A DNA stretch of 64,000 nucleotides from Asterias rubens. Its lineage: Eukaryota. Location: positions 9,672,001 to 9,736,000 of the forward strand of contig NC_047076.1 of assembly GCF_902459465.1 (NCBI RefSeq). Reading direction: 5' to 3'. Of the stretch, positions 2,552-51,100 are shown piece after piece (the first letter of the stretch is position 1; each line of letters begins with the position of its first letter). The notes beneath the pieces are model-generated. The model made no database searches and had not been told where the DNA came from. It saw only the letters and a program-made list of their open reading frames with translations. Both the position numbers and the translations under genes were made by a program.

Positions 2552-4120
2552 TAAACTAAAACAATTTGTTTACCCCAAATCTGCCTAAAGTGGTCAAAAC
2601 ACAATTGCATCGGGCTGTATAGTGATTTCAAAAGTTTGTTTTGTTTAACAAGTCCCTTCCACTCTCAAAGTACATGTATATACAAAAAATCATTTACCTG
2701 ATAATAGCTAATATTAAATGTATAATTTTTGGCCATTTGTTTCATTTTCCTCTGCAAAAGTGCTAACTTTCTGGCAACACTGTTTTCGCGCACTTGAAAC
2801 ACCAAACATGTTATTGCATTTTTATGTAGGTTGGTATCTTCCAACTTTAAAAGTGTCATTAAAAGTGGCATTAAAAGTGGCATTAAAAGTGCCACTTTTA
2901 GATTTATGAGCCACTTCAATACCCCAATTTTTCGCTATAAGAAAATATGACAAAAGCACCCCTATTTGAAATAACAGTTTTATCCAAAGTTTTCAATATG
3001 GTTGTGCAATATGTGTGCAAGACAAACCCCTACTTTTCCCTCTTTAGACGTACCAGTGCTTTCATGTTACCTATATTTCAATACTTCAATACTTAACTAC
3101 AGGTAAAAACAAGATATATTTTGTAGTAGAGAGGTTTCGCTAGTGTAGAGATACAATACAGGAGCTCATACACGTCCTAGAAAAACAGATACTGTTTTGC
3201 AGACTTTTAGTTGTATTTTTGTCCTAGATCAAAAACATTTCCCACGGAATTGCTTTCACTGGTATCGTGCTAGATATAGACAGATTTTTTAAAAGTTATT
3301 TGCACGCAAAACGATGAGAAAATGCACTGTTTTAAGCATGGGGGCTCTATCAGTTATGTTTGATATAAAAACACTCATGATGGATGCGAGTGCACTCAAG
3401 TTAAACATACATGTACCAATAGTTTGTGAAACAAAAATCCAACACGCAGTTGACGTGAACGGATACGGTTATCATATCCGTATGTGTATTTGTATCCACG
3501 CTTGCAAAAACTCTCTATTATATGTGCCCATACCTACTAGGAGTTTTGCCAAAATCCATTTTGTTTAAAGTCTGTCACCTTTTTAAAATTATCTTTGATT
3601 TTAACAGCGACCCAGTCCTGGAGTATTCTAATGTGTTCATAATGCACCGCTTTTGATGTAGTGACTACCAGTTGTTTTTGTTTCTTAAAACCTCATGTCT
3701 CTTACAGATGTATCCACCTTGTTTCAACAGTCATCTGATAAAAGTTTAAGTTTGGGGGTTGGGTTTCTGAAGTTTGCACTCACCTTTAGAGTTTTCTTGT
3801 AAAGTTTTGATTTACTAACATCTCTTTTGCACAGAAGAGATTTACGTTAGAAGGATATTTTAGCATCAAACTTTTAATTTCAAACCTTTCAATGCAATTT
3901 TACACATTGTGTGCACATATGACAAGAATTCTATATAAAAACATAATAAAAATTTCTCTTGCCATCGGAAATTGCAGGAATATCACATGGTACAAGACAT
4001 GGAACTGGGTAAACACAATAGGGTAATACATGTACATAATATGCAAATAACGTATTGGACTGTAACAGTTCTCCCTCCCTCCTTCAGTTACTTTATGTGA
4101 AAATTTGACAAAATAATACA

Positions 4121-4201
4121 CACATAATGAATGTTTATGAGTGCAATGGTGCGAATATGTTCATGAGTTGAAAGATGGAATGTTCTATTCAACGAGGCGG
4201 A
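4121..4201 (+). mobile_element. Family B fragment (first hairpin arm only)
   Basis: Nearly identical to 35681-35761. Confidence 0.85.
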
Positions 4202-11916: not shown

Positions 11917-14781
11917 CAACATATGTACCCCTACCACAACATATGTACCCCTACCGCAACAAACGTACCCCTACCTTAACAAACGCACCCCTACCACAAC
12001 AAACGTACCCCTACCACAACAAACACACCCCTACCACAACAAATGCACTCCTACCACAACAAACATACCCCTACCACAACAAATGCACTCCTACCACAAC
12101 AAACGCACCCCTACCACAACAAACGTACCCCTACCACAACAAACGTACCCCTACCACAACAAACGCACCCCTACCACAACAAATGCACCCCTACCACAAC
12201 AAACGTACCCCTACCACAACAAATGTACCCCTACCACAACAAATGCACCCCTACCACAACAAACGTACCCCTACCACAACAAATGTACCCCTACCACAAC
12301 AAACGCACCCCTACCACAACAAATGCACCCCTATCACAACAAACGTACCCCTACCACAACAAACGCACCCCTACCACAACAAACGAACCCCTACCACAAC
12401 AAACCCACCCCTACCACAACAAACGCGCCCTTACCACAACAAACGTACCCCTACCACAACAACTGTACCCCTACCAAAACAAACGTACCCCTACCACAAC
12501 AAACGCACCCCTACCACAACCAAGGTACCCCTACCACAACAAACGCACCCCTGCCACAACCAAGGTACCCCTACCACAACAAATGCACCCCTACCACAAC
12601 AAACGTACTACCCTACCACAACAAACGTACCCCTACCACAACAAACGTACCCCTACCACAACAAACGTACCCCTACCACAACAAACGTACCCCTACCACA
12701 ACAAACGCACCCCTACCACAACAAATGCACCCCTATCACAACAAACGTACCCCTACCACAACAAACGTACCCCTACCACAACAAACACACCCCTACCACA
12801 ACAAACATACCCCTACCACAACAAATGCACCCCTACCACAACAAACGCACCCCTACCACAATAAACGCACCCCTACCACAACAAACGTACCTCTACCACA
12901 ACAACACACCCCTACCACAACAAACGCACCCCTACCACAACAAACGCACCCCTACCACAACAAACATACCCCTACCACAACAAACGCACCCCTACCACAC
13001 AAACGCACCCCTACCACAACAAATGCACCCCTATCACAACAAACGCACCCCTACCACAACAAACGCACCCCTACCACAACAAACGAACCCCTACCACCAT
13101 AAACCCACCCCACCACAACAAACGTACCCTTACCACAACAAACCTACCCCTACCACAACAACTGTACCCCTACCAAAACAAACGTACCACTACCACAACA
13201 AACGCACCCCTACCACAACCAAGGTACCCCTACCACAACAAACGCACCCCTACCACAACCAAGGTACCCCTACCACAACAAACACATCCCTACCACAACA
13301 AAGGCTACCCTACCACAACAAACGTACCCCAACCACAACAAACGCACCCCTACCACAACAAACGCACCCCTACCACAACAAATGCACCCCTATCACAACA
13401 AACGTACCCCTACCACAACAAACGCACCCCTACCACAACAAACGAACCCCTTCCACAACAAACCCATCCCTACCACAACAAACGCACCCTTACCACAACA
13501 AACGTACCCCTACCACAACAACTGTACCCCTACCAAAACAAGCGTACCCCTTCCACAACAAACGCACCCCTACCACAACCAAGGTACCCCTACCACAACA
13601 AACGCACCCCTACCACAACCAAGGTACCCCTACCACAACAAACGCACCCCTACCACAACAAACGTACTACCCTACCACAACAAACGTACCCCTACCACAA
13701 CAAACGTACCCCTACCACAACAAACGCACCCCTACCACAACAAATGCACCATTATCACAACAAACGTACCCCTACCACAACAACAACCCCTACCACAACA
13801 CACGAAACCCTACCACAACAAACCCACCCCTACCACAACAAACGCACCCTTACCACAACAAACATACCCCTACCACAAAAACTGTACCCCTTCCGAAACA
13901 AACGTACCCCTACCACAACAAACGCACCCCTACCACAACCAAGGTACCCCTACCACAACAAACGCACCCCTACCACAACCAAGGTACCCCTACCACAACA
14001 AACGCATCCCTACCACAACAAAGGCTACCCTACCACAACAAACGTACCCCAACCACAACAAACGCACCCCTACCACAACAAACGCACCCCTACCACAACA
14101 AATGCACCCCTATCACAACAAACGTACCCCTACCACAACAAACGCACCCCTACCACAACAAACGAACCCCTACCACAACAAACCCATCCCTACCACAACA
14201 AACGCACCCTTACCACAACAAACGTACCCCTACCACAACAACTGTACCCCTACCAAAACAAACGTACCCCTTCCACAACAAACGCACCCCTACCACAACC
14301 AAGGTACCCCTACCACAACAAACGCACCCCTACCACAACCAAGGTACCCCTACCACAACAAACGCACCCCTACCACAACAAACGTACTACCCTACCACAA
14401 CAAACGTACCCCTACCACAACAAACGTACCCCTACCACAACAAACGCACCCCTACCACAACAAATGCACCATTATCACAACAAACGTACCCCTACCACAA
14501 CAACAACCCCTACCACAACACACGAAACCCTACCACAACAAACCCACCCCTACCACAACAAACGCACCCTTACCACTTCAAACATACCCCTACCACAACA
14601 ACTGTACCCCTTCCAAAACAAACGTACCCCTACCACAACAAACGCACCCCTACCACAACCAAGGTACCCCTACCACAACAAACGCACCCCTACCACAACA
14701 AACGTACTACCCTACCACAACAAACGTACCCCTACCACAACAAACGCACCCCTACCACAACAAACGCACCCCTACCACAAC
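11917..14781. repeat. 20-bp minisatellite (aaacgYacccctaccacaac), ~140 units, with higher-order periodicity
   Basis: Read directly; the + strand is almost G-free, so all three + frames stay open for long stretches. Confidence 0.98.
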
Positions 14782-15083
14782 ACGATATCATACATTCTTC
14801 ATTAATCTTTCAATTATAACAAATTGCAGACTTTAAAAAACGTTTGTATTCAAGCAATTACATTATAATGCATGTTTTGCACCAGTAAGTATCAATAATA
14901 ATTGAAAAAGAGTTGCAAAAGTTTAAACAACCAGTGATTGTCATGATTTGCAACTTACAAGAATACACACAACTTGACACATACTAAGTGGTAACAGTCT
15001 CAGATTAATTCAACAATTTAAACCCTCCTTCAATATTGATTTTAAAAAAAATTTACAAATTAATGTAACATTTTCTTTCACAG

Positions 15084-27100: not shown

Positions 27101-30100
27101 CTGATAGACCTCGCCAACCATGGTACAACAATGAAAACGAAACTGGACGAAACTGGAGGAAATCAAGACTTCAGGTTCATTGGCAGCTCTATGTGGATCA
27201 GCGCAAACGTGTAAATGACATGATTGACCAGGCCATACAAGATCACTACAGGAAAGAGCTTGAGGGGGCTGACACCAAGACAGTCTTCAAGAGGGTAAAT
27301 ACTCTTTTGAAAAAACCAGTCAAGACTTTACCTGCCTATGATTCTGCAACGAATGGTGCTTAGCAACGAATTTGCTACATTCTTTGCTGGTAAAGTTGCC
27401 AAAATTATTATGGCATTGAAACAGAGCTGGCTAATTCTCATCGCTCCCTGAACCACAACAACCACGAACTCATGAACTTATCTGCACAATGTCCGAGTTT
27501 GATCATGTTACCGCAGTAGACATTCAGAAGTACATCATGAATACTCCAGCAAAATCATGTCTGCTGGATCAAATACCTACAATGGTTCATCGAGCAGAAT
27601 GTACGTATGTTCATTCCCGTCATAACTCAGATTGCTAACTGCTCTCTCAACTCCGGCACCTTCCCAGACTGATGAAGCACGCCATCATCACTCCTGTCAT
27701 CAAGAAACAATCTCTTGATCCAAATGAGCTAAAGTACTATCAACCAGTGTCCACCGTTGACCACCGCATCATGTTAAACAGGCTCGCGGACGAGATGGGA
27801 TTGGAGAGTAATGTGCTCAAATGGATTGGGTCATACCTTTCTGGAAGAACAACCAGTGTATGTATTGACGGCTCCTTGTCTCAACATCTTGATTTGGAAT
27901 ATGGCATACCACAGGGATCGATAGTTGGCCCCCAATAGTTCAACATCTACATGTACACCACTCCTTTTGGCAACATCCTGCGTAAGCACATTTGTCTGGA
28001 TTTGCCTGAGCACCTAACAGCGGCCACTCAAATCAGCTCTGTATTTGTTTGCTAATTTCTTAGTACATGTATATTGCTCATTTTGTGTTCCTATTCTTAT
28101 ACAACTGGATTTGTTACTACACCTGGAATCTTCAGGACTTTTTCTGTGTATCCTGGAGTCATCTGAATTGTGAAAACAGTGAGTCTACGTCACTCTACTT
28201 ACCTGTAGAGCAAATTACTACAATTGCATATTCCCTATACACCGCTAGGTAACACTAAGACTTTTTTACAACAAGTGCAACAGCGCCCTCCATCGCCCAG
28301 TGCACACTGCGCGAACGCCATGCGCAATCTGCGGACGGAGGGGGTCCCCCCTCCGCGTGTCTCAGTGCGCCATTCCCCATCCAGCCCCAGCGAATCTCCC
28401 TCGGTGGCCGTGGTGGGGGACGGGGTTGAGTTTGACGACCATAACCCGGCCGCTCATGCCATCAGGCTGGGCGCGCTGGCGGTTGGTCGGCAGATTGCTC
28501 ATGCCGAGCCGGCGAACTGGGGTTCCCCCGGTATCCCGCACTCGGTGGGTCCGTCCTCATCCTTGGGTTTTACCCCTTGTTCTGGGATCCCCGTGACACA
28601 ACCCGTGTCCGAAGGGACATCTGAGGTTACCCCAGCCCTCTCTTCCGTCGAGGGAAAAAGGCCAAAAAGGGGAATAGGTCACGGCGCTCTTCGAGCTCCA
28701 GTGATTCCTCCCGGGAATCCCGCAGGGGCAAACAACACCGCGGTGACTCGCTTTCACGGGCCGACTTCATGGAGGCCTTTCAAGCGCTGACCGCCACCCT
28801 GGCGGGCAGGTTGGAGCAGGGCCATGGCCCAGTGGCTCCGCCCGTTTTGTCGGCCCTTCATGGCGTGTCAGCCCGGCCGGGTTTTCCGGCCCGGGTCGAC
28901 GCACCGGTCCCGTTCGACCACCAGTGGGTGGCCTCGGGTAGCGGTATCCCTCATACCGTGAGCAGGGCCCCGGCGTCTCCGCTGTGCCACCGCTCGGTAC
29001 CGGTGCCGACGCAGACTCGTGTCCCAGCGGTATCCCTGGCCCCTGTGGGGCCACCTGTGACCACCAGGACTGTAACATCCCTGTCGGGGATCAGTTTGCA
29101 CCTGGCGTCAGAATTTTCTGATTCGGGTTCATCTATGGGCCATGATAAGAGTACTGGGCACTCGCCCGGGACGAGTCGCCCCCCTGCCGACCGGGGGGCT
29201 ACTTCCTCCAAACGTCCCTTCGCCGATAAGGCCCGTGGGAAATTGGAGGAAGTGGCTAAGAAGTTGAACTCAGCCTCCCGTTTTGGGATGTGGTCCACTT
29301 CTTTCTTGTTACTCCTTTCCGAGTATTTGGCCTTGGGCGCTGATGGCGACTCGGCGGTTCCCGCCGATCTCGTGGTCGCTGCCCTGCACTGCCTTGATGG
29401 CTTGAGGACCATCCTGGTCTTGACGCCTTGCCGCTCACAGGTCCCGATCTTTTTGCCGACCGGTGGGTCCTCGAGACACTCGAGTATGGCTACGCGCTCG
29501 AGTTCACGAGGACCCCCCCCCCCCGTCGGACATGATAATTCGGCCCACTCCGATTCCGTCCGACATGGGGAAGTGGTTGGCTCTCGAGGGGGAGGTTTCC
29601 TCCCTCCTCCAGAAACGAGCAATTTACGCCGCTCCCATGCAAGGGGCGCGGACGGGTTTCATGTCCACCTTCTGAGGTGGGCGAGTGGCGCCCCATCTTA
29701 AACCTGAAACCCCTCAACAGATTCATACGTCCGCAGTGCTTCCGTATGGAGACGCTGCGGACCATTCTCGAATCTATCGTCACACCCGCCTGGGGGGCGA
29801 GCTTGGACCTGAGGGACGCGTACCACCACGTGCCCATCAGGCCCAAGGATCGCAAATTCCTACGCTTTATGTACAACAGCGTCATGTACAAGTTTGCGAC
29901 CCTGCCCTTCGGGCTGTCCTTTTCGCCCCGAGTGTTCACCCGGGTAGTGAAGACAATCGGGGCTGCTCTACGGAGGCTCTGGGTCATGATATTCATGTTA
30001 CTCATTCACATCCCGGGGGAAGAGAATGTGACAGCCGATGCCCTCTCCAGGGGCTGGATTGCCCCGACAGAGTGGTCCTTGCTCCCTCAGGTGGCACAGA

Positions 30101-33100
30101 CCCTCTTCCGGCTGATCGATCGGCCCCAAATAGACTTGTTTGCCTCACGGGCAAACAATCAGCTGTCAACGTATTGCTCAAGGGTTCCAGACCCCAACGC
30201 ATGGCAGATCGACACCCTGTCGATTCCGTGGGAGGGCCTCCTGGCTTACGCCTTTCCGCCATTCTCGCTCATCCCCCGGGTGTTGACCAAGATAGAGACC
30301 GCCCACTGCCGGGTGCTCCTCATAGCCCCGTTCTGGCCGCGTCAGCCGTGGTTCCCTCGACTCGTGAGTCTCCTGGTCCACCGCCCGGTGGTCCTGCCTC
30401 AACGTCCGGATCTACTTTATCAACCCAGTTCCGGGATGATTCATCCGGCCCCGAGGGAACTCCACCTGACGTGCTGGGTGTTATCACCCAGTCGCTCCGC
30501 ACAGCAGGCCTTTCACGCTGGGCTGCAGAGCTTGCCGCCCAGTCGAGGCGTGCCTCCACTCGTAAGATCTACGATTGCCGACTACGCCATTTCTTTTAAT
30601 GGTGTAGACGGCGATCTATACGTCCCCCCAGTGCTTCTCTGAAGGACATAGGGGATTTTCTTCTTAACCTTTACGAGAGTGGGCTAGCGACCGCCACGGT
30701 TAAAAATTACCGGTCGGCCATTGCAGCCATTCATGAGGGCTTTCCTGATGGCTCCTCGATTTCTACCAATCGAGCGATCTGTCAGCTGGCAAGGGGCATG
30801 TTTGTATTCCAGCCTGCGGTACGCAAACTTGTCCCATCTTGGGACCTCCAGAGTGTTCTATCCACTCTAGCAGGTCCCCCATTCGAACCCCTCAGCAACG
30901 CTCCTTTGCTGCAGTTGTCAATAAAGGTTTCCTTTCTGCTGGCGGCTGCTACGTCACGCAGACGTAGCGAGCTCCACACCCTGACATTGGCACCGGGTCA
31001 CATTCGTTGGGAACCCGGTGGTATCCGGCTGGTTCCTTCCGCAGGTTTTATTACAAAGAATCAGTCTGATTCTTTTCAGCCTCCGGACATTTTCGTTCCG
31101 GACTTAAAATCCTTCTCTGCGGTCGCGGCTGACAGGCTTTTGTGCCCTGTCCGGGCGCTTAAATGGTACATAAGCCGCACCAAGCCTATCCGCTCTGGCC
31201 ATCACCAACTATTCTTGGCCTCGACAACCCCTCATCAACCGGTAACGCGGTGTACTATAGCTCGCTGGATTGTTACCGCCATCCGCTCCGTTCCGGGCGG
31301 GTGGCCGGCAGCCGAGGGCAATATTCACGCCCACAACGTACGCGGGGTGTCGTCCTCTTGGGCATTTTTTAAAGGTATACCAATAGAGGATATAACCAAG
31401 GCAGCCTGTTGGAAGAGTGCTACAACCTTCTCACAGTGCTACCTGAAGGACGTACTCCAGACTGATGGCCAGGCAGGCCGTGCAGTGTTGCAGTCGGCCT
31501 CCCGTGGGTCATCCTCCCGCTAGTCCTCTTCGCATCAAGTCTTCACCCTCGGTGAGTTCTTGTCTGTATGCCATATATTTGTGCCACTGTTTAACATTGA
31601 TAATGTTTTTTCCTTGTCCTATTGGGACGACACCCCCGGGTCGTGTGCGGACAATGTGGCCCCCATATTTTGTGTTTCTGATTTCTTGCAACAGCTGGTG
31701 CCTACTTCCGGTCGCGCCTCGTTGCCATGACGCCATAATAATTGTATAAAGATGTGCAATAGTCCTGCGTATACCCACCGCCTTCCAAAACGGTGCTAGT
31801 CTATGCAATTGTAGTAATTTGCTCTACAGGTAAGTAGAGTGACGTAGACTCCCCCCCCCCCCCCCACAGTAGTGTGGGTAGGGTCTACGAACGAATACTT
31901 ACCTGTAGAGCATCCCTCCCGCCTGCCCCACTATACTTGGTTCTTGTATACTTGTACGTATGAGTTTCCGAGAAAGAGGGCGATTGCGCATGGCGTTCGC
32001 GCCGGTGTGCACTGGGCGATGGAGGGCGCTGTTGCACTTGTTGTAAAAAAGTCTTAGTGTTACCTAGTGGCGCATAGGGAATATGCAATTGTAGTAATTT
32101 GCTCTACAGGTAAGTATTCGTTCGTAGACCCTACCCACACTACTGTGGGGGGGGGGGATTTTGTGTTGGAATTTTTGTTGAAAATTCTGGTGTATAAAAA
32201 GCTATCTCACTCTTTGGTTGCTGCCTGTGCAGTCATCCAACTAGTCCATGGACATTGTTCGTTCATCTGGGGACAATGGAGGTACAATGTAAGTATCCTT
32301 TTGATTCTCTCCCTGCTTGCTAGACCATTGTACTGTACTGACTCATCTGTGGTCAGCTTTGTTCCATCAGCATCAATTGTGCTTGGTGCTTCCATTCTAC
32401 CAAAGACACAGTTAGGTCTTATCCAGCACAGTTAGGTCTCATCACGACTGCTTGGATTCCTATGTCAGCCAATATGAGAGTACTTTCTGTGACATCTTGG
32501 ATAATTTTGCGCCTTGGAAAACAAGATCAGTCAAGGTCTGAACTGAAGTCTCCTGGGTTAATGATGACATTCGTACAGCAAGAAAGATCTGTTGTCAACT
32601 GGAGCGGAAATGGCGGAAAAATGGCAAACTGGAAATACAACGACAAGAATTTCGCAGCCAATGTAAAGTAGTCAGAAATTTTATCAACCAGGCAAAGATC
32701 GCCCATTATTCATCTCAAGTACAAGAATCCTCAGGAGATCAAAAGAAGCTCTTCAAGATAATAGGTAAGTTGTTGCTCAAACCCAAAACCCCTGTCCTTT
32801 CATCCACTAACAATGAACAGGACTTGGCAAATGAATTCCAGAAGTTCTTTGTCACCAAGATGTCAGACATCCGCTCATCATTTTCATCAGTCCCTTACAA
32901 CGTGCCGCAGACATTGCCACAACTTCAACCAGAGTGTAGACTATCCACTTGAGCCTGCCACTTGCTGAGATTCAAAAGGTTATTATGAAATCTCCTTCAA
33001 AATCCTGCGAGCTGGATCCAGTGTCAACATCAATGATGAAGCAAAACATTGATATATTTGTACCCTGCATCACTAATCTTGTCAACGAATCACTCAATTC

Positions 33101-36100
33101 CGGTTGTTTCCCCAATAGCCTCAAAGTTTCCTACATCAGACCGATCATCAAAAAACCAAACCTGGACAAGGAGGTACAGTATTCAAAAACTATAGACCAG
33201 TTGCAAACTTAAATCATCTTGGAAAAGTCATTGAGTGGGTAGTTTCATCACGCACTTCTGATCACATTCATGCTTTCACCCTGTCCGACGTGTTCCAGTC
33301 AGCATACAAGCTTTTCCATGGGACAGAAGCTGCACTAGTCCGTGTGAGCAACGATATTCTTTCTGCAATGGACAAAAAAACCTAACAGCGCTAGTCCTGC
33401 TAGACTTGAGTGCTGCTTTTGACACTGTTGATCACATCATCCTTTTCTCTCGGCTCCTAGCATGGTGCAAATCGTATCTCTACAATAGAACTCGGCATGT
33501 ATGTATTGGCACCGTGGTAGCCGACCCTGTTGTTTTGAACTACTCTGTGCCACAGGGGTCCGTACTCGCCCAAAAGTGTCTGTGGTGCCCAAAAGCATGA
33601 CCACGCTACACCATATTTACAAGATCTTCACTGACTGCCGATTAGGGAGAGGATAGCCTTCAAGATCTTGGTTTATGCGTACAAATGCTTCAACAACACA
33701 GCACCTGGCTATTTATCCTCTTGCCTGTCTCTCCATCGGCCTGGCCGTCCAAGTCTACGATAAGCATCTGCCACTACTCGCCTCATGGAACCTAACTCGA
33801 TCAAACTTCTTAAGTCAGCTTCGTCGCACATTCTCTCATTTTGCTCCACACACCTGGAATGCACTCTCCACCTCAATCAGGAAATCTGACTCTCTTTGAA
33901 CATTTAAGAAGTGTATCAAACATTCTCTGTACCCTATCTATGCGCTGCCTTCTTGACGTAGTGGCGTTATACAAATGCCCGATATGTATGTATGTTATTT
34001 GCTATCACGTGAAGGACAATCCTCCAATCAAATGGCAAATGGCAATGGCAATGCTCTTCTCTACAGTCTTCCTAACAACCAGATTTCCCGTCTTCAACGC
34101 CTCCAAAATACTGCTGCCCCCATTGTGACACTGTCTAAGAAATCCTGTTCCATCACCCCCCATTCTGAAAGAACTACACTGGCTCCCTATCGCTCAAAGA
34201 ATCATCTTCAAGCTGATGCTTATTGTCCACAAAGCACTTAATGGCAAGGCTCCCCACTATATTTCTGAACTTCTTCAAGTTTACACTCCATCAAGAAATC
34301 TTCCATCAAGTTCCATGCTTCTTCTCATTGAACCCAAGTCTCGACACTCATGGGGATACAGGTCTTTTTCTTCAGCTGCGCCACGCATCTGGAACTCTCT
34401 ACCACTTAATCTTAGATCTTGTCTTTGTACCACAACATTCAAATCTCTTCTCAAAACTTATCTTATGTGACAGGTTTTCAAGGACTAATACTGTTGTGTC
34501 TGGTTTTCTTTGTTTTGTTTTGTTTTGTTTTGTTTTGTTTGTTGCTGGTGTTTAGGCGGGAGATCGTACATTCACTGTTACAGCAGCAAAAGAGTGGAAT
34601 GAACTTCCCTCCTATATTAAATCTGCTCCATCAGTGGATGTGTTTAAGAAGGTTCTCAAAACATACCTCTTTCCTAATTGATTTTCTATTGTTGTTTTGT
34701 TTGTATACTGTTTAATATACTGCTCTTTCTATTGTAAACGCTGTGATATGGTTTTACTATGAATAGCGTACCTAAATGCAACATAGTAGTAATATTAATA
34801 ATCATGCGTTAAAGTAGAGTTGACAATTTAACTCAATATGAGTCAAGTGCATAAAGAGCATCAAATATAATATATTATATAACACCCAAGCAGATCCTTG
34901 CCATTTGATTGGAGGATTGTCCGTCACGTGATAGCAAATAAAAGTACCATTGCACGCTGAGTCACTCGCCGTGCTTGTTCGTTCCATCCGAAAAGTACCA
35001 TTCGTGCCAGCGTGCAATGGTACTTTTCGGATGGAACGAAAAAGCTGAGTAAAAACATCACTGCGTGCGCGTGTCTTTGGTAACGCAGCAGGTGTTACTG
35101 CAAGAAGGCATAGTAAAATTACTAGCATTCGGCTTCTACAGTTGAAATTGTTTGTTTTGAAAGTTGTTTCTTTCAATCAAAATGACAAAGTTCTACTTGG
35201 ATGTTATATAAAACAAATAATGAATGTTTTTCATTCGTGCAATGGTGCGAATATGTTCATTCGTTGAAAGCTGGAATGTTCCATTCAACTCGGCTCCGCC
35301 TCGTTGAATAGAACATTCCAGCTTTCAACTCATGAACATATTCGCACCATTGCACTCATAAACATTCATTATGTGTATACTAATTGCCAGTCAATTGCAT
35401 AAAGAGCATCGAATATAATATACTAATGGCCAGTCAATTGCATAAAGAGCATCGAATATAATATACTAATGGCCAGTCAATTGCATAAAGAGCATTGAAT
35501 ATAATTTACTAATAGCCAGTCAATTGCATAAAGAGCATTGAATATAATTTACTAATAGCCAGTCAATTGCATAAAGAGCATGGAATATAATATACTAATG
35601 GCCAGTCATTTGCATAAAGAGCATCGAATATAATATACACTAATGGCCAGTCATTTGCATAAAGAGCATCAAATATTATACACATAATGAATGTTTATGA
35701 GTGCAATGGTGCGAATATGTTCATGAGTTGAAAGATGGAATGTTCTACTCAACGAGGCGGATTGAAAGATACAACTTTCAAAACAAACAAAGCGTAGGCC
35801 TACAATTTTTAATTGTAGAGGCCGAATGCTAGTAATTTTACTAATATGCCTTGCAGTAACACTGCTGCGTTACCAAAGACACGGGCACGCAGTGACGATT
35901 TTACTCAGCTTTTTCGTTCCATCCGAAAAGCACCATTGCACGCTGGCAGCGTGCAATGGTACTTTTCGGATGGAACGAAAAAGCACGGTGAGTGACTCAG
36001 CGTGTATTGGTACTTTTATTTGCTATCACGTGACGGACAATCCTCCAATCAAATGGCAAGGATCTGCTTGGGTGTTATATAAAATATACTAATGGCCAGT

Positions 36101-39100
36101 CAATTGCATAAAGAGCATCAAATATTATACACATAATGAATGTTTATGAGTGCAATGGTGCGAATATGTTCATGAGTTGAAAGATGGAATGTTATATTCA
36201 ACGAGGCGGAGCCGAGTTGAATGGAACATTCCAGCTTTCAACGAATGAACATATTCGCACCATTGCACGAATGAAAAACATTCATTATTTGTTTTATATA
36301 ACATCCAAGTAGAACTTTGTCATTTTGATTGAAAGAAACAACTTTCAAAACAAACAATTTCAACTGTAGAAGCCGAATGCTAGTAATTTTACTATGCCTT
36401 CTTGCAGTAACACCTGCTGCGTTACCAAAGACACGCGCACGCAGTGATGTTTTTACTCAGCTTTTTCGTTCCATCCGAAAAGTACCATTGCACGCTGGCA
36501 GCGTGCCAGCGTGCAATGGTACTTTTCGGATGGAACGAAAAAGCACGGCGAGTGACTCAGCGTGCAATGGTACTTTTATTTGCTATCACGTGACGGACAA
36601 TCCTCCAATCAAATGGCAAGGATCTGCTTGGGTGTTATATAAAATATACTAACGGCCAGTCATTTGAATAAAGAGCATCAAATATAATATATTATATAAC
36701 ACCCAAGCAGATCCTTGCCATTTGATTGGAGGATTGTCCGTCACGTGATAGCAAATAAAAGTACCATTGCACGCTGAGTCACTCACCGTGCTTTTTCGTT
36801 CCATCCCAAAAGTACCATTGCACGCTGGCACGCTGGCAGCATGCAATGGTACTTTTCGGATGGAACGAAAAAGCTGAGTAAAAACATCACTGCGTGCGCG
36901 TGTCTTTGGTAACGCAGCAGGTGTTACTGCAAGAAGGCATAGTAAAATTACTAGCATTCGGCTTCTACAGTTGAAATTGTTTGTTTTGAAAGTTGTATCA
37001 AAATGACAAAGTTCTACTTGGATGTTATATAAAACAAACAATGAATGTTTTTCATTCGTGCAATGGTGAGAATATGTTCATTCGTTGAAAGCTGGAATGT
37101 TCCATTCAACTCGGCTCCGCCTCGTTGAATAGAACATTCCATCTTTCAACTCATGAACATATTCGCACCATTGCACTCATAAACATTCATTATGTGTATA
37201 CTAATGGCCAGTCATTTGAATAAAGAGCATCAAATATAATATACTAATGGCCAGTCATTTGCATGATTTGTGAAGATTTTATGTACATGTGTGAAATTTT
37301 TTGATAAAGAGTGTTGACCTGTTCAAACTGGACGTTGCGGAGCTCTATTTAATATTTTGTTATGTTCATAAATATTTTGTTTTGTTGGACTGATTTTTAT
37401 CTGCTTTTCACAAACCTGAACATCTTGGGTTTTTAATCAAACAAAGCACTACATTTCTAGTCTCTTTGTATTTGTTCATAATTCATGCAGGTCAAAATGG
37501 ATGAGTTGGAAGAACATAAAATAGCAACCTGGAGAGGTATGTATGAAAAGTCTTTTCCAAAATTACATTCAGTTAATGATTGTGAACTGCTTTAAAGACA
37601 CTGGACACTATTGGTAATTGTCAAACACCTGTCATCTCACTTGGTGTATCTCAACATACTCATAAAATGACAAACCTGTGAAAATTTGAGCTCAATTGTT
37701 GGTCCTCGAAGTTGCAAGATAACTATGAAAGAAAAAACACCATTTTCACACAAAGTTGTGTGCTTTCATAAACTAAATGCTTGATTTCGAGACATCAAAA
37801 TATAATTCTGAGGTCTCGAAATCGAATTCATCAAAAATTACTTCCTTCTCAAAACTATGTCACTTCAGAGGGAGTCTTTTCTCACAATGTTTAATACTAT
37901 TAACCGCTCCCCATTACTCGTTAGCAAGTAAAGTTTTATGCTAACAATTATTTTTAGTAATTACCAATAGTTTCCACTGCCTTTCAGTTACTTATCACTA
38001 TGTAAATTATGAGGCAATATCAAAGCCATGCAAAAGAAATTCAAAATTGCAAATGTAAATGAACTTAGTTTACAGAACTATGATGCTGATATATATATGG
38101 GCTGATGTATGCACATTATCAATGGCTCAGACAATATCATTGTCCATGTACTTGTGGTATTTGGTAGACAACAAACAACATAGGCTATGGTCAGATACAA
38201 TACAAAAGTTAGGACCAAACTGGTTTAGGATATTAGCTTATACATGTTCATTGAGACATCGTACACAATGCCAACCAATGCTCACACACTGCTAGTCAAG
38301 CACAAATAAATCCTGACTTTTTCCTCAAATGTCATAATTTTTTTTTATAAAGATGTCTTTAGGAGAGTTCTATTTGAATAAGGACCAACCTCCCCAGAAG
38401 GGATGGCATGTTTGTTCCAAGTTAACGTACTTGTAGTGTAAACAAATAATGTTTTGGATACAGAACCAAAAACCTATTTAACTTATTTCAGCAGATCTTC
38501 TGGTCTGCTGGAAAATTAAGAGGTTTTAAAGCCCATCATTTTCCAAACTGAATAAGGGTGGACATTTATGTACATTTCGTCCCCTTTTGTTTGCAGTTGG
38601 TCAGCGTATTATTATGCCTGGGCTTTGTTTTTCCATCATGCACTTTGCATCTGACAGTGTTGCGCTTCATTTGACCCAGATAAAGAGAGTGGCTCCATGA
38701 ACTATGGTGTGGTTCTGCTGTGTCTACTTGCAGTAGTCTTGGTTTCATTTTGACAATGATATTGTCTATAACGAAAAACACATTTTGCTCAAAACATTTA
38801 TAAAACGATCTTGCTAAAAGGCACAGAGATTTTTTTTGTATTTCATGTGGCATGATAATGCAAAGGTATATTCAATGTATTAAAAACCTGATTCTGAACC
38901 ACAGAAAATAGAGTAGAGTTAGAGAAGTGAGATCCTGGTAAGATTGTAATTCTACTCAGTGACAGTCAGGCCATGAGATCTACATGGGTATGTGAGTAAA
39001 GATTCAAAAACATATATTGAGTCTCTTCTTGAGAATGAGATCTACATGGGTATGTGAGTAAAGATTCAAAAACATATATTGAGTCTCTTCTTGAGAATGA

Positions 39101-48100: not shown

Positions 48101-51100
48101 ATTCTTGCTATACAACTGCCATTGTTATCATATTCTTGCTATACAACTGCCATTGTTATCATATTCGTGCTATACAACTGCCATTGTTATCATATTCGTG
48201 CTATACAGCTGCCAACAACTGCCATTGTTATCATATTTTTGCTATACAACTGCCATTGTTATCATATTCTTGCTATACAGCTGCCATTGTTATCATATTC
48301 TTGCTATACAACTGCCATTGTTATCATATTCTTGCTACAACTTCAGCCGTTGTTATCATATTCTTGCTACAACTTCAGCCGTTGTTATCATATTTTTGCT
48401 ATACAACTGCCATTGTTATAATATTCTTGCTATACAGCTGCCATTGTTATCATAATCTTGCTTCAACTTCAGCCATTGTTATCATATTCTTGCTACAACT
48501 TCAGCCATTGTTATCATAATCTTGCTAAAACTTCAGCCATTGTTATCATAATCTTGCTACAACTTCAGCCATTGTTATCATATTCTTGCTATACAACTGC
48601 CATTGTTATCATGTTCTTGCTACAACTTCAACCATTGTTATCATATTCTTGCTATACAACTGCCATTGTTATCATGTTCTTGCTACAACTTCAGCCATTG
48701 TTATCATAATCTTGCTACAACATCAGCCATTGTTATCATAATCTTGACCCAATGAGAGAACAAAAAGAATTACCAGCTTAAATGCCAGTGTGGCAAGACC
48801 ACAACTCATTTTCCAGATCACTCATGACTGCCCTGACTTCAGAGCACTAAAGGGCGAGTAGGTCATCAGAGACCTTGATGAGGACACCATCAAGTGGCTT
48901 GAAGTTACTAAATTAACAATTTGACTTTATTCAATGTCTACCTTGGTCCATAGATCAAACGAAACAAGAAGTGTTCTAATATGGTTGTATCACTGTAATT
49001 CATCTTGAAAACTAAACTGGGATGACCTGATAATTTGCAACAACTTTTTGTATCATTTTCATTTTGTGTAAAATGCGTGAGTCTGGGAATTAGAAACAAA
49101 TGTTTAACTTTTTACAACCCTCCTTATGAAGTAATAAGAACGGTTTCAACAAGTACAATGTAGTGATGTATTATATTCATTCTTAAATTGTCATCATTAT
49201 ATTTTCATCAGTACCCATGTCGATATACAATAACATGATTGTTTCAATGTATTATATATATGTAGAATTTGGCTGCTGAGAAGACATACAACAATTTGGA
49301 TATTACCATCCAGCAAGCATTGCAGTTTAGACAAACCTACTTTGAAGGAGTCCATACATGTCAAGCCACTGAGAAATTAGAAACTATCATGGAGAAAATT
49401 ATCAGAGCAGAGGTAAATATCCTTTTATATTTATAGGAACATTTTTTCTTTAGAACCATTGCACTTGAAATAAATTTCTACGTCATTCAATTGTAGCATG
49501 CCCCTTGATCTTTAAATGGAAGAAGTTGGATTAACTTGCATTTCATTAACCTTTAGATTTCATGAAAATGCAACATTTCTGTGGAGTCGGCCATAATGCT
49601 ACTCTCACACTTGGGTGAATATTCTTGCGAATATGAATATTTGAAATTCGCGATGAATTCGCCCAAAAGCTGCGATTCGATAGTGAATATGTTCTCGGTC
49701 ATTCCTCAACATCTCCTTACTAATATCTTAAGCATGATACGCACGCTTTACCAACAGTACCAATGGCTTACCGATGCTTACGAAAATTGATGGCGAATTA
49801 CCGTCTTCACAACATTCGCTGAAATTTAGGAAGCGCTTCGTATTGCCCCTCTCACAGAGTAGCGAATGTTCTTGCGAAGATGAATGTTTAAACTTGGCGT
49901 TGAATTCGTCCAAAATGGCGGTCTCATCCCTCGATCGTCCTCGGTCGGCCCTCTTCTTTCCAATATCTAATGAACATATTAAGAATGCTTACCAACGCTT
50001 GCCAAAGCCTTTACGAACGTTGCCAACACCCAGCACGCTTTACCAATGTTAACAAGTCGACGGTGAATGACCGTCCTCACAACATTCGCTTAAATTTAGA
50101 AACCGGTTTCTAAATTGACCGATCTTTGTAAGGAGGTGGGGAATAATTTGTGGAGGTTCCGAATTTGTTGCCAACGCTTACGAAGACATGGCGAATGTTG
50201 CGAAGTTTGAGCGATTGTCAAATATTTCCTTTCGTTTGCATATTCGCTAGCATATTCGTCGTGTGACGAATAAAATGTGTTTTATTATTACTGTAGGTTT
50301 TAATGCCTGTTTTGGACAAGAAATTAAGGTCATATACAATCTGATGTATAAATTTTGATGAAATAATAAGCAATTATAAGCAGAGGTTTGAATTTTGAAA
50401 CACACGGTTTTAAATGGAAGTCAAGCCAATAATGATGTCACACTCATTTTGTATAGATTGTAAATATCCGAAGTGGGGTTCAGTAGTTTTGATTGTTTCA
50501 GTTATTTCATTTTGATTTTCATGTATTTCAATATCTGAAGACGCCATGATGACATAACTTAACAGTTTTCTCTCCAGTTGCCTGTCTAACTGTATATGAA
50601 GTTTCTTGTTTAAATGAGCTTGGAATGTGTGCCTTTTTTAGCGGATGATCGATTGGGAGACTAGCAGAAAAAGTATTCAAAAAAAAGAACGGGAAGAAAG
50701 AAAACAACAAGAGGTGTTCCCAGACTTATAATCTTTGACAGCACATGTAACATTTTAAATTGTGACCACTCTTTGACCTTAATTAAAGGAACAAGAAGCT
50801 CTTTAATTTGGAAAATCATATTTCCCGAACCATATGTCATGGTATNNNNNNNNNNNNNNNNNNNNNNNNNNNNNNNNNNNNNNNNNNNNNNNNNNNNNNN
50901 NNNNNNNNNNNNNNNNNNNNNNNNNNNNNNNNNNNNNNNNNNNNNNNNNNNNNNNNNNNNNNNNNNNNNNNNNNNNNNNNNNNNNNNNNNNNNNCGGAGA
51001 GTATATTTTACTTGAATGGTGGCAATGGTCATACTCACGTGTTCAATTAGTGAAATATTATTGGGTTATTTTTTGACAGTACAGAGATGCAACTTTTCCA

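Follow-up and report, generated by a model that had tools for sequence, protein, structure and literature searches.

Insertion without target site duplication into a tandem array of palindromic targets by an abundant sea star element, with a tyrosine recombinase as a plausible agent

How the tyrosine recombinase (YR) elements of eukaryotes, such as Crypton, DIRS and Ngaro, insert into DNA is, to our knowledge, known almost only from models. Here, we describe a locus that bears on this question: in a 64-kb window of the genome of Asterias rubens (64,000 nucleotides, contig NC_047076.1, positions 9,672,001 to 9,736,000 of the forward strand), four copies of an element with a full length of 517 bp sit at one site of a 43-bp minisatellite, in both orientations and with no target site duplication (TSD). 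Cryptons are the first point of comparison. Those of animals carry no terminal inverted repeats (TIRs) or other terminal repeats and are accompanied by abundant non-autonomous derivatives, and YR sites are built as inverted arms around a 6-8 bp spacer (PMC3212892). Cryptons are present in sea urchin and other deuterostomes (PMC3212892; 10.1101/2022.05.23.493040), and their insertions and clean excisions have been directly observed in Chlamydomonas (10.1101/2022.05.23.493040). The sea star element is Crypton-like in that it leaves no TSD, has constant ends without repeats between them and exists in non-autonomous copies far commoner than autonomous ones, and a joined-end circle entering a short similar target is the route proposed. 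However, published Cryptons share a 4-6-bp motif of one terminus with the target (e.g. CACCG/CAYCG), and a 16-bp target used in mirror image with a 6-bp offset, a dumbbell fold and an internal complement of both ends are not described there.

The last of these features has its counterpart in DIRS-1, whose internal complementary region (ICR) is complementary to both extremities, one adjacent to the other, is essential for retrotransposition and acts on single-stranded complementary DNA (cDNA), the ends of which it is thought to bring into a circle junction (PMC7192593). The internal segment of the sea star element complements first the 5' and then the 3' extremity, in the same order as the DIRS-1 ICR, and the two have in common the lack of a TSD and a similarity of about 3 nt between junction and target (PMC7192593). 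Unlike DIRS1, the element has no long inverted terminal repeats and no gag, reverse transcriptase (RT), RNase H or YR genes, and comprises only 517 bp; its ICR-like segment follows directly after the 5' arm, which makes the 5' part a simple hairpin, and nothing tested indicates an RNA intermediate.

Among bacterial systems, Tn916 uses AT-rich, two-fold symmetric targets with a spacer of 6 bp, cuts the strands at staggered positions 6 bp apart and leaves no TSD, with a non-homologous hexamer on one side. At integron attC sites and in the integration of CTX phage, the site is a folded single strand, one pair of strands is exchanged and replication resolves the intermediate, so that the polarity of the product is fixed. 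These elements are bacterial and have the recombinase gene on or beside them, whereas here thousands of copies are found in an animal genome, in both orientations. Integron cassettes, moreover, are gene-bearing and enter attI in a single orientation, whereas the copies of this element are non-coding and point both ways. The original prediction for this locus, an integron-like cassette array, is in this respect not supported: we found no integrase among the long open reading frames (ORFs) of the window, and neither attI nor gene cassettes nor a uniform orientation.

What the locus does contain is a regular arrangement of insertions. The minisatellite, which Tandem Repeats Finder detects, runs from 34840 to 37264, and probing the window with the unit sequence detects ten 43-bp units, all on the plus strand. 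Sequence reading, termini searches and repeat finders agree on the element copies A (34875-35379, minus), B (35677-36082, plus), C (36126-36642, plus) and D (36692-37200, minus). The plus copies interrupt catcaaatat^aatatactaat at a joint where neither boundary can be slid, and thus represent simple insertions without duplication; the minus copies interrupt aatataatata^ctaat, where a 4-bp TATA ambiguity exists if they are read alone. Excising any of the four recreates a normal 43-bp unit. In both orientations the hexamer aatata adjoins the 3' end of the element, and the two orientations are offset by 6 bp. The predicted geometry of four copies at one unit site, in both orientations, with a 6-bp offset and exact empty units, is thereby borne out. 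The parts of the array are as follows.

34840-34874, plus strand: U0, the degenerate first unit and left array border (gagtcaagtgcataaagagcatcaaatataatata), with the catcAaatat variant; its target is filled by A
34875-35379, minus strand: copy A, 505 bp, young subfamily, at aatataatata^ctaat (termini searches, alignment)
35380-35676, plus strand: units U1-U7, of which U1-U6 are empty and G-type (catcG, cattG or catgG before aatat) and U7 is the left flank of B
35412-35427, 35455-35470, 35498-35513, 35541-35556 and 35584-35599, plus strand: strict empty targets in the U1-U7 block (target scan)
35595-35639, plus strand: unit U6 with an extra CA (aatataatataCActaat), which breaks the 6-bp target spacer
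35677-36082, plus strand: copy B, 406 bp, older subfamily, at aatat^aatata, with a 16-bp insertion, positions 86-201 absent and ~5% divergence
36083-36125, plus strand: the single array unit divided by B and C (aatata followed by ctaatggccagtcaattgcataaagagcatcaaatat; sequence reading)
36126-36642, plus strand: copy C, 517 bp, full-length reference and nearest to the subfamily consensus, at aatat^aatata
36643-36691, plus strand: aatata and unit U9, between the 3' ends of C (plus) and D (minus)
36692-37200, minus strand: copy D, 509 bp, young subfamily, with a private 8-bp deletion, at aatataatata^ctaat
37201-37264, plus strand: U10 (empty, A variant) and the partial last unit, which form the right border; strict empty target at 37233-37248

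Dispersed copies of the element were collected along two routes. Searching metagenome contigs for a 17-mer from the 3' end gave L021, L025 and L040, and a spurious 107-codon ORF running through the 3' end was searched among proteins, the encoding contigs of which gave L049-L059. At unrelated loci, 11 copies of full length and 3 partial ones were recovered, with 78-99.8% identity to C. They all agree in their outer ends, and in each the two structural halves are joined alike; the 517-bp unit is therefore the mobile unit. A composite of two separate miniature inverted-repeat transposable elements (MITEs), a foldback and a TIR element sharing TATA duplications, was considered and rejected, as the halves are joined in the same way in subfamilies of 78-99% identity and the empty units exclude a TATA TSD. 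No dispersed copy has a TSD, including L049, L050 and L051, which are about 99% identical to C. When boundary shift and TSD length were scanned together, the apparent duplications lay wholly within the constant TATA motifs, and no model with variable flank bases works. The same copies decide how the minus insertions of the array should be read. As had been anticipated, these could on their own be taken to carry a TATA TSD, and for the minus copies alone the ambiguity is real; it is removed because the 11 dispersed copies all end TATACA(C/A)ATAATG...GGGTGTTATATAA, and the offset is therefore 6 bp. A TATA or TA duplication is excluded because the empty units of the array equal the filled units minus the element, and such models need units 3-5 bp longer than any seen. 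The expectation that there would be no consistent TSD has thus held, both for the empty units and for the 11 dispersed copies.

Word depth in public contigs separates the element from its surroundings: it is 1e5 to 5e5 for the element, across four organism labels, about 60-100 for the unique flanks and 160-270 for the minisatellite. Therefore, the element belongs to a very abundant dispersed family, and the 43-bp repeat is a locus-specific host sequence and no cargo of the element. For the same reason we discarded the idea that the minisatellite is an internal part of a Helentron- or HINE-like element, as its word depth is that of a low-copy sequence compared to ~1e5 for the element and the dispersed copies lack the repeat. 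The mobile element of 517 bp is non-autonomous and very abundant in sea stars.

An alignment of the flanks, 14 left and 16 right, reveals a two-fold symmetric target, AWTAK-N6-MTAWT, with the following base counts.

Left half: -5 A in 12/14; -4 W in 14/14; -3 T in 12/14; -2 A in 12/14; -1 G more often than A or T (G in 7/14)
Right half: +2 A in 12/16; +3 T in 10/16; +8 T in 14/16; +9 A in 14/16; +10 W in 13/16; +11 T in 11/16

Single-position P values are 1e-5 to 4e-3 against the local background, and positions farther out are at background. The ORF used for retrieval extends into the right flank; as a check on bias from this route, T8/A9 are read as Tyr as well as in stop codons and are present in 4/5 sites found without that route; additional readings at the C terminus of ORFs are consistent with T8/A9 in 2-3/4 cases. 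The joint of the element falls between K and N6, on the left of the dyad axis and 3 bp from it, and the N6 of the target stays beside the element's 3' end. Since the joint is 3 bp off the dyad of a symmetric site, an insertion in the opposite orientation lands 6 bp away, as it does in the window: plus and minus insertions use one TA...TA pair mirror-wise (aaTAt^aatata^cTAat), and each minisatellite unit is a perfect target in both senses (AATAT-AATATA-CTAAT). Seven strict targets are empty in the 64-kb window, 6/7 of them in array units, with ~2 expected by chance, and the array is a roughly thousand-fold local concentration of landing sites. The units had been proposed to act as a tandem array of att-like sites, and this is well supported: each carries the 16-bp palindromic target of the family.

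Within N6, at +1 to +3, the target reads xAT in 10/16 sites, compared to TAT at the start of the element, and N6 matches TATACA in at least 4/6 bases in 10/16 sites and in at most 1 in 5/16. In the dispersed copy L055, the 5' arm of the element itself (ATAATGAATGTTT) serves as right half-site, with 6 nt of spacer before it. We also observed at this copy (L055 2011-2040) that the right flank AGCTTC is followed by ATAATGAATGTTTTAT, a 16-nt near-copy of the 5' arm, with no further element sequence after it. Within the otherwise constant ends, variation is greatest in the 5' hexamer, which reads TAATCA in L050 (242-247; 98.8% identical to C) and TACACA at 4117-4122 in the window; such variability would be expected if the hexamer were an overlap or coupling sequence.

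The units themselves fall into two classes. All filled units (4/4) have the catcAaatat variant, and all catcG, cattG or catgG units (6/6) are empty (Fisher p = 0.015, hand count). This A/G polymorphism lies at target position -6/+12, where the logo is weak (A 8/14), so the G-block may simply be a recent expansion of one empty unit. The left border of the array is agtcaagtgcat and the right one agtcatttgcat; the two make up a 12-bp direct repeat, 43 bp apart in the inferred ancestor, and the left side of U0 resembles unique sequence. The minisatellite has thus probably grown by slippage between agtcaagtgcat and agtcatttgcat from a single ancestral unit. A suggested link to the neighbouring exon is not borne out: nothing points to a function, and the array looks like a slippage-type minisatellite in an intron that holds the target by chance. 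In U6 (35595-35639), the extra AC prolongs the match to the 5' end of the element (tatacAC); the extra bases could stem from slippage or be the scar of an imprecise excision.

The array was checked against short public contigs only. Among these, error-free contigs cover both outer borders, at 34751-34878, which includes the first bases of A, and at 37235-37615. In addition, a 429-nt contig with a second organism label covers the right border and its flank (37195-37612) with 20 differences, ~95% identity; the array may therefore have the same right end in a related species or a divergent haplotype. Next to it, at 37592-37800, lies a SINE-like (short interspersed nuclear element) repeat that is far more abundant than the 517-bp element, with a word depth of 1e6 to 1e7 in all four runs and a border marked by sharp loose ends at 37588-37592. 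Contig loose ends near the array are swamped by this neighbour and are uninformative on the element borders.

The ends of the element are constant, 5'-TATACA(C/A)ATAATGAATG...GCTTGGGTGTTATATAA-3', and do not repeat each other in inverted form; TATACAC... and ...TTATATAA have only TATA in common, and there are neither terminal inverted nor long direct repeats. The only ORFs within the element are spurious. The element had been called a hairpin, but it consists of two adjoining stem structures and an inner palindrome with 41+41 nt rather than of one hairpin. Positions 4-166 are self-complementary, with ~88-166 complementing 4-83 (BLAST of C against the window, folding), and positions 168-206 pair with 481-517 (BLAST, single-stranded DNA (ssDNA) fold and consensus fold). 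In copy C these parts are located as follows.

36129-36291, plus strand: hairpin 1 (element positions 4-166; self-complementarity, ssDNA fold, 11-copy consensus fold)
36275-36331, plus strand: internal complementary segment (positions ~150-206), the complement of the 5' end (cattcattatttgt) followed by the complement of the 3' end (ttatataacatccaag...)
36460-36544, plus strand: inner perfect palindrome with 41-nt arms and a 3-nt loop, absent from the dispersed copies L057 and L059
36606-36642, plus strand: 3'-terminal arm (positions 481-517), which pairs with 168-206

As ssDNA, C folds with -159 kcal/mol (z = -21.7), and its two ends, 5' and 3', meet at the foot of the adjoining stems, giving the shape of a nicked dumbbell. 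In a comparison of 11 copies, the ends and the internal complementary segment are kept where the interior is replaced or deleted, and the inner palindrome seems dispensable, to judge from its absence in two copies. Copy B has lost the right hairpin-1 arm together with most of its internal complementary segment. Three independent breakpoints fall at the tip of hairpin 1 (position ~85), namely those of the truncated copy at 4117, of the 86-201 deletion in B and of the unit downstream of the P0010 junction described below, and the centre of this palindrome looks like a hotspot of breakage or deletion.

Which enzyme could produce such insertions? Insertion without a TSD at palindromic targets is shown by the flanks and empty units; as its agent we lean, by a modest degree, towards a tyrosine recombinase. 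A dimeric site-specific recombinase would cut two strands 6 bp apart, acting on the joined-end or the folded form of the element, and the tyrosine recombinase could be supplied in trans by a Crypton- or DIRS-like element. The polarity of the product is constant, with TATACA of the element on the 5' side and N6 of the target on the 3' side. Together with a homology limited to the first bases (TAT vs WAT, 10/16), this would fit a single strand exchange resolved by replication. The folded strand, as a nicked dumbbell, might serve to keep the ends together, or might itself make up the recombination site. Joined ends do occur in public data: the ORF P0010 spans the exact junction of 3' end and 5' end, with 27 residues identical to the junction made in silico, as the original prediction of gtgttatataa-tatacacat had it.

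Several points weigh against this reading. The P0010 junction is read from a protein translation and stands in a chromosomal context, not in a free circle, and the joined-end junction was not found among the fetched dispersed loci. No autonomous partner or YR gene with the ends of the element was found, in searches that included no eukaryotic genome collection; the long ORFs of the window show an RT fragment only (Pfam). A search of viral contigs with three patterns, including the circle junction, gave no match, nor did a search of genome contigs. Within the 64-kb window, the termini recur beyond A-D only in the truncated copy at 4117, and there is therefore no longer autonomous copy in it. 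The half-sites of the target measure 4-5 bp, compared to arms of 11-13 bp in classical YR sites, and the joined ends place the right arm ATAAT one base farther out than the targets do (spacer of 7 vs 6). YR reactions usually need identical overlaps, and here N6 matches the hexamer of the element at ~3/6 bases on average. Covariation gives no support for the fold, with double changes in 2/174 pairs and sequences too alike for the test. The dispersed copies come from metagenome assemblies whose source organism is probably an asteroid, the internal order of the array rests on an assembly without long-read support, and in the maximum-likelihood tree a clade of A and D is rejected only weakly (approximately unbiased (AU) test, p = 0.04), so that an early duplication of one insertion could explain both. 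Separately, the joined ends resemble the unit over 11 bp (atataatatac); we tried this resemblance as a long recombination core, which predicts flanking 11-bp direct repeats, and rejected the idea, as no copy has them.

A bolder version of the recombinase reading would make the element an undescribed kind of animal mobile DNA, a small 'dumbbell' whose internal segment pairs with both ends and whose fold is the recombination site, with a trans-acting YR performing a single strand exchange at the edge of the 6-bp spacer and replication resolving the product. We put this forward tentatively and consider it rather doubtful. If true, the dumbbell would be the eukaryotic counterpart of integron attC sites or of CTX-phage integration, and any tandem repeat with the 16-bp site would be a natural target array.

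The alternative that fares best is an HUH/Rep-type nuclease, of the rolling-circle Helitron/Helentron or the IS200/IS605-like kind, which would ligate a single-stranded element into a nick in one strand and use the hairpins as recognition structures. Such an enzyme would account for the lack of a TSD, for constant and asymmetric ends, for the very strong single-strand structure and for a product that always resembles a one-strand insertion at one nick, and the head-to-tail junction is compatible with a circular template being copied. In echinoderms, Helentron-derived HINEs are numerous, lack TSDs and carry palindromes, and sea urchin and molluscs are reported to have HINE-like elements (PMC4067079). 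Like HINEs and DINE-1, the element is abundant, non-autonomous and TSD-less, contains palindromes and is associated with tandem repeats. Helentrons and HINEs, however, insert at TT with bordering T-runs, and possess subterminal inverted repeats of 12-15 bp, a short 3' stem-loop and tandem repeats in their interior (PMC4067079). No terminal feature matches: the sea star element has no border T-runs, no 12-15-bp subterminal inverted repeats and no short stem-loop near the 3' end, and its minisatellite is low-depth host sequence. The marks of Helitrons (5'-TC...CTRR-3', a hairpin ~11 bp from the 3' end, insertion between A and T) are likewise missing from its ends, TATACA...TTATATAA, and in place of an A^T or T^T target the base pairs flanking the joints vary (G^A, T^C, A^T, T^A, G^T and so on). 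Furthermore, a monomeric nick does not predict a symmetric target with mirror joints 6 bp apart, and the left-flank tetranucleotide is not strict, unlike in IS608-type targets. We regard an HUH nuclease as unlikely.

Still less probable is a DDE cut-and-paste transposase that works without TSD, as in the Spy group (PIF/Harbinger-ISL2EU-Spy), or with a TSD hidden in TATA, in which case the palindromic logo would be the footprint of a symmetric transpososome. Palindromic logos centred on a staggered cut are indeed typical of DDE transposases and count in favour of this idea, as does TATA at both ends and at the internal border of the element; a TATA TSD is compatible with 11-12/13 dispersed copies taken alone. 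TSD-less DDE elements exist in invertebrates, and Spy, with TIRs carrying GGANNNNG, inserts at the centre of AAA^TTT without a TSD (PMC4122938). The sea star element shares with Spy a precise TSD-less insertion into a palindromic AT-rich target in an invertebrate, but within AWTAK-N6-MTAWT it joins at a point 3 bp from the centre, and no inverted repeat relates its two ends. From a stagger of 6 bp one would also expect a 6-bp TSD, which is missing even in the ~99%-identical copies L049, L050 and L051. The empty units of the array, in turn, exclude a TA or TATA duplication, and comparing them with the filled units shows no sign of a MITE that duplicates TA or TATA (Tc1/mariner-like or other DDE).

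Could the four copies have arisen locally instead? One or two insertions may have been multiplied by unequal crossing-over, duplication or gene conversion, with the position in the unit inherited. Minisatellites expand by unequal exchange, the filled units are all of the A variant, and A and D are alike in orientation, site and ~25 bp of flank, in addition to the weak rejection of their clade. The tree of the four with the dispersed copies nevertheless rejects a four-copy clade (AU p = 1.1e-7) and a sisterhood of B and C (AU p = 5.6e-8), and in this the expectation of separate insertions, rather than local duplication, is supported. B is nearest to L054 (97.8%) and L055 (97.3%), is only 95.1% identical to C and shares its 16-bp insertion with L054-L057, the older subfamily. 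A is 99.0% identical to L049 and L051 and 99.8% to L052; C is 99.6-99.8% identical to L049, L051 and L052; and D is 98.6% identical to L049, 99.1% to L052 and 98.0% to A. These three lie in an unresolved star with L049-L052, each as close or closer to dispersed copies (98.6-99.8%) than to the others (98.0-99.0%), and have no private changes in common. The left flank of A is a degenerate border unit, unlike that of D. An inversion that turns a minus into a plus copy was rejected, as all units share one orientation and a flip that includes the hexamer gives tatatt, not aatata; an inversion between TATA repeats would misplace two A's. Local spread is thus highly improbable, and the tree and identities point to at least three independent insertions (B, C and at least one minus copy), and probably to four. 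B, from the older subfamily, would have arrived first, and D, A and C later, from the young one.

An assembly artefact, in which minisatellite units and copies from an abundant repeat were wrongly joined, might be feared with thousands of near-identical copies and no spanning read or contig, but is hardly credible given error-free contigs, likely from the source sample, over both outer borders, private differences in each copy, distinct unit variants between the copies and the same insertion geometry at 11 unrelated loci.

For the insertion of YR elements, the family offers a clean natural read-out, with thousands of young copies, a defined 16-bp palindrome and a joint fixed 3 bp off the dyad. 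The locus adds ten paralogous sites, four filled and six empty, used in mirror image by an element whose fold juxtaposes its ends. If the partner enzyme is a YR, the family would be the first of its kind in an animal whose target and overlap geometry are known in detail, and a tractable substrate to ask whether one or two strand exchanges take place in DIRS/Crypton-type integration. An ordinary minisatellite can evidently become an insertion hotspot by multiplying a short target, which is relevant to how clustered intronic transposon copies are read.

Outside the array, the window contains three further pieces related to the element or its target.

4117-4201, plus strand: truncated dispersed copy with the 5' arm only (positions 1-85), left flank caaaataa^, hexamer TACACA, broken at the tip of hairpin 1
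33995-34038, plus strand: 44-bp fragment of the 3' region of the element (positions 451-494), embedded in other repeats
49416-49431, plus strand: the sole strict-consensus target outside the array in the window (AATATCCTTTTATATT), empty

The fragment at 33995-34038 lies in the second of two stretches of degraded retrotransposon remains, at 28200-31500 and 33300-34500, the first of which gives an RVT_1 match at 29677-30639. A (TTTGT)6 microsatellite is found at 34509-34540. Farther upstream, at 11943-14819 on the plus strand, a 958-codon ORF without a Pfam match is overlapped by several long ORFs of the same strand in other frames.

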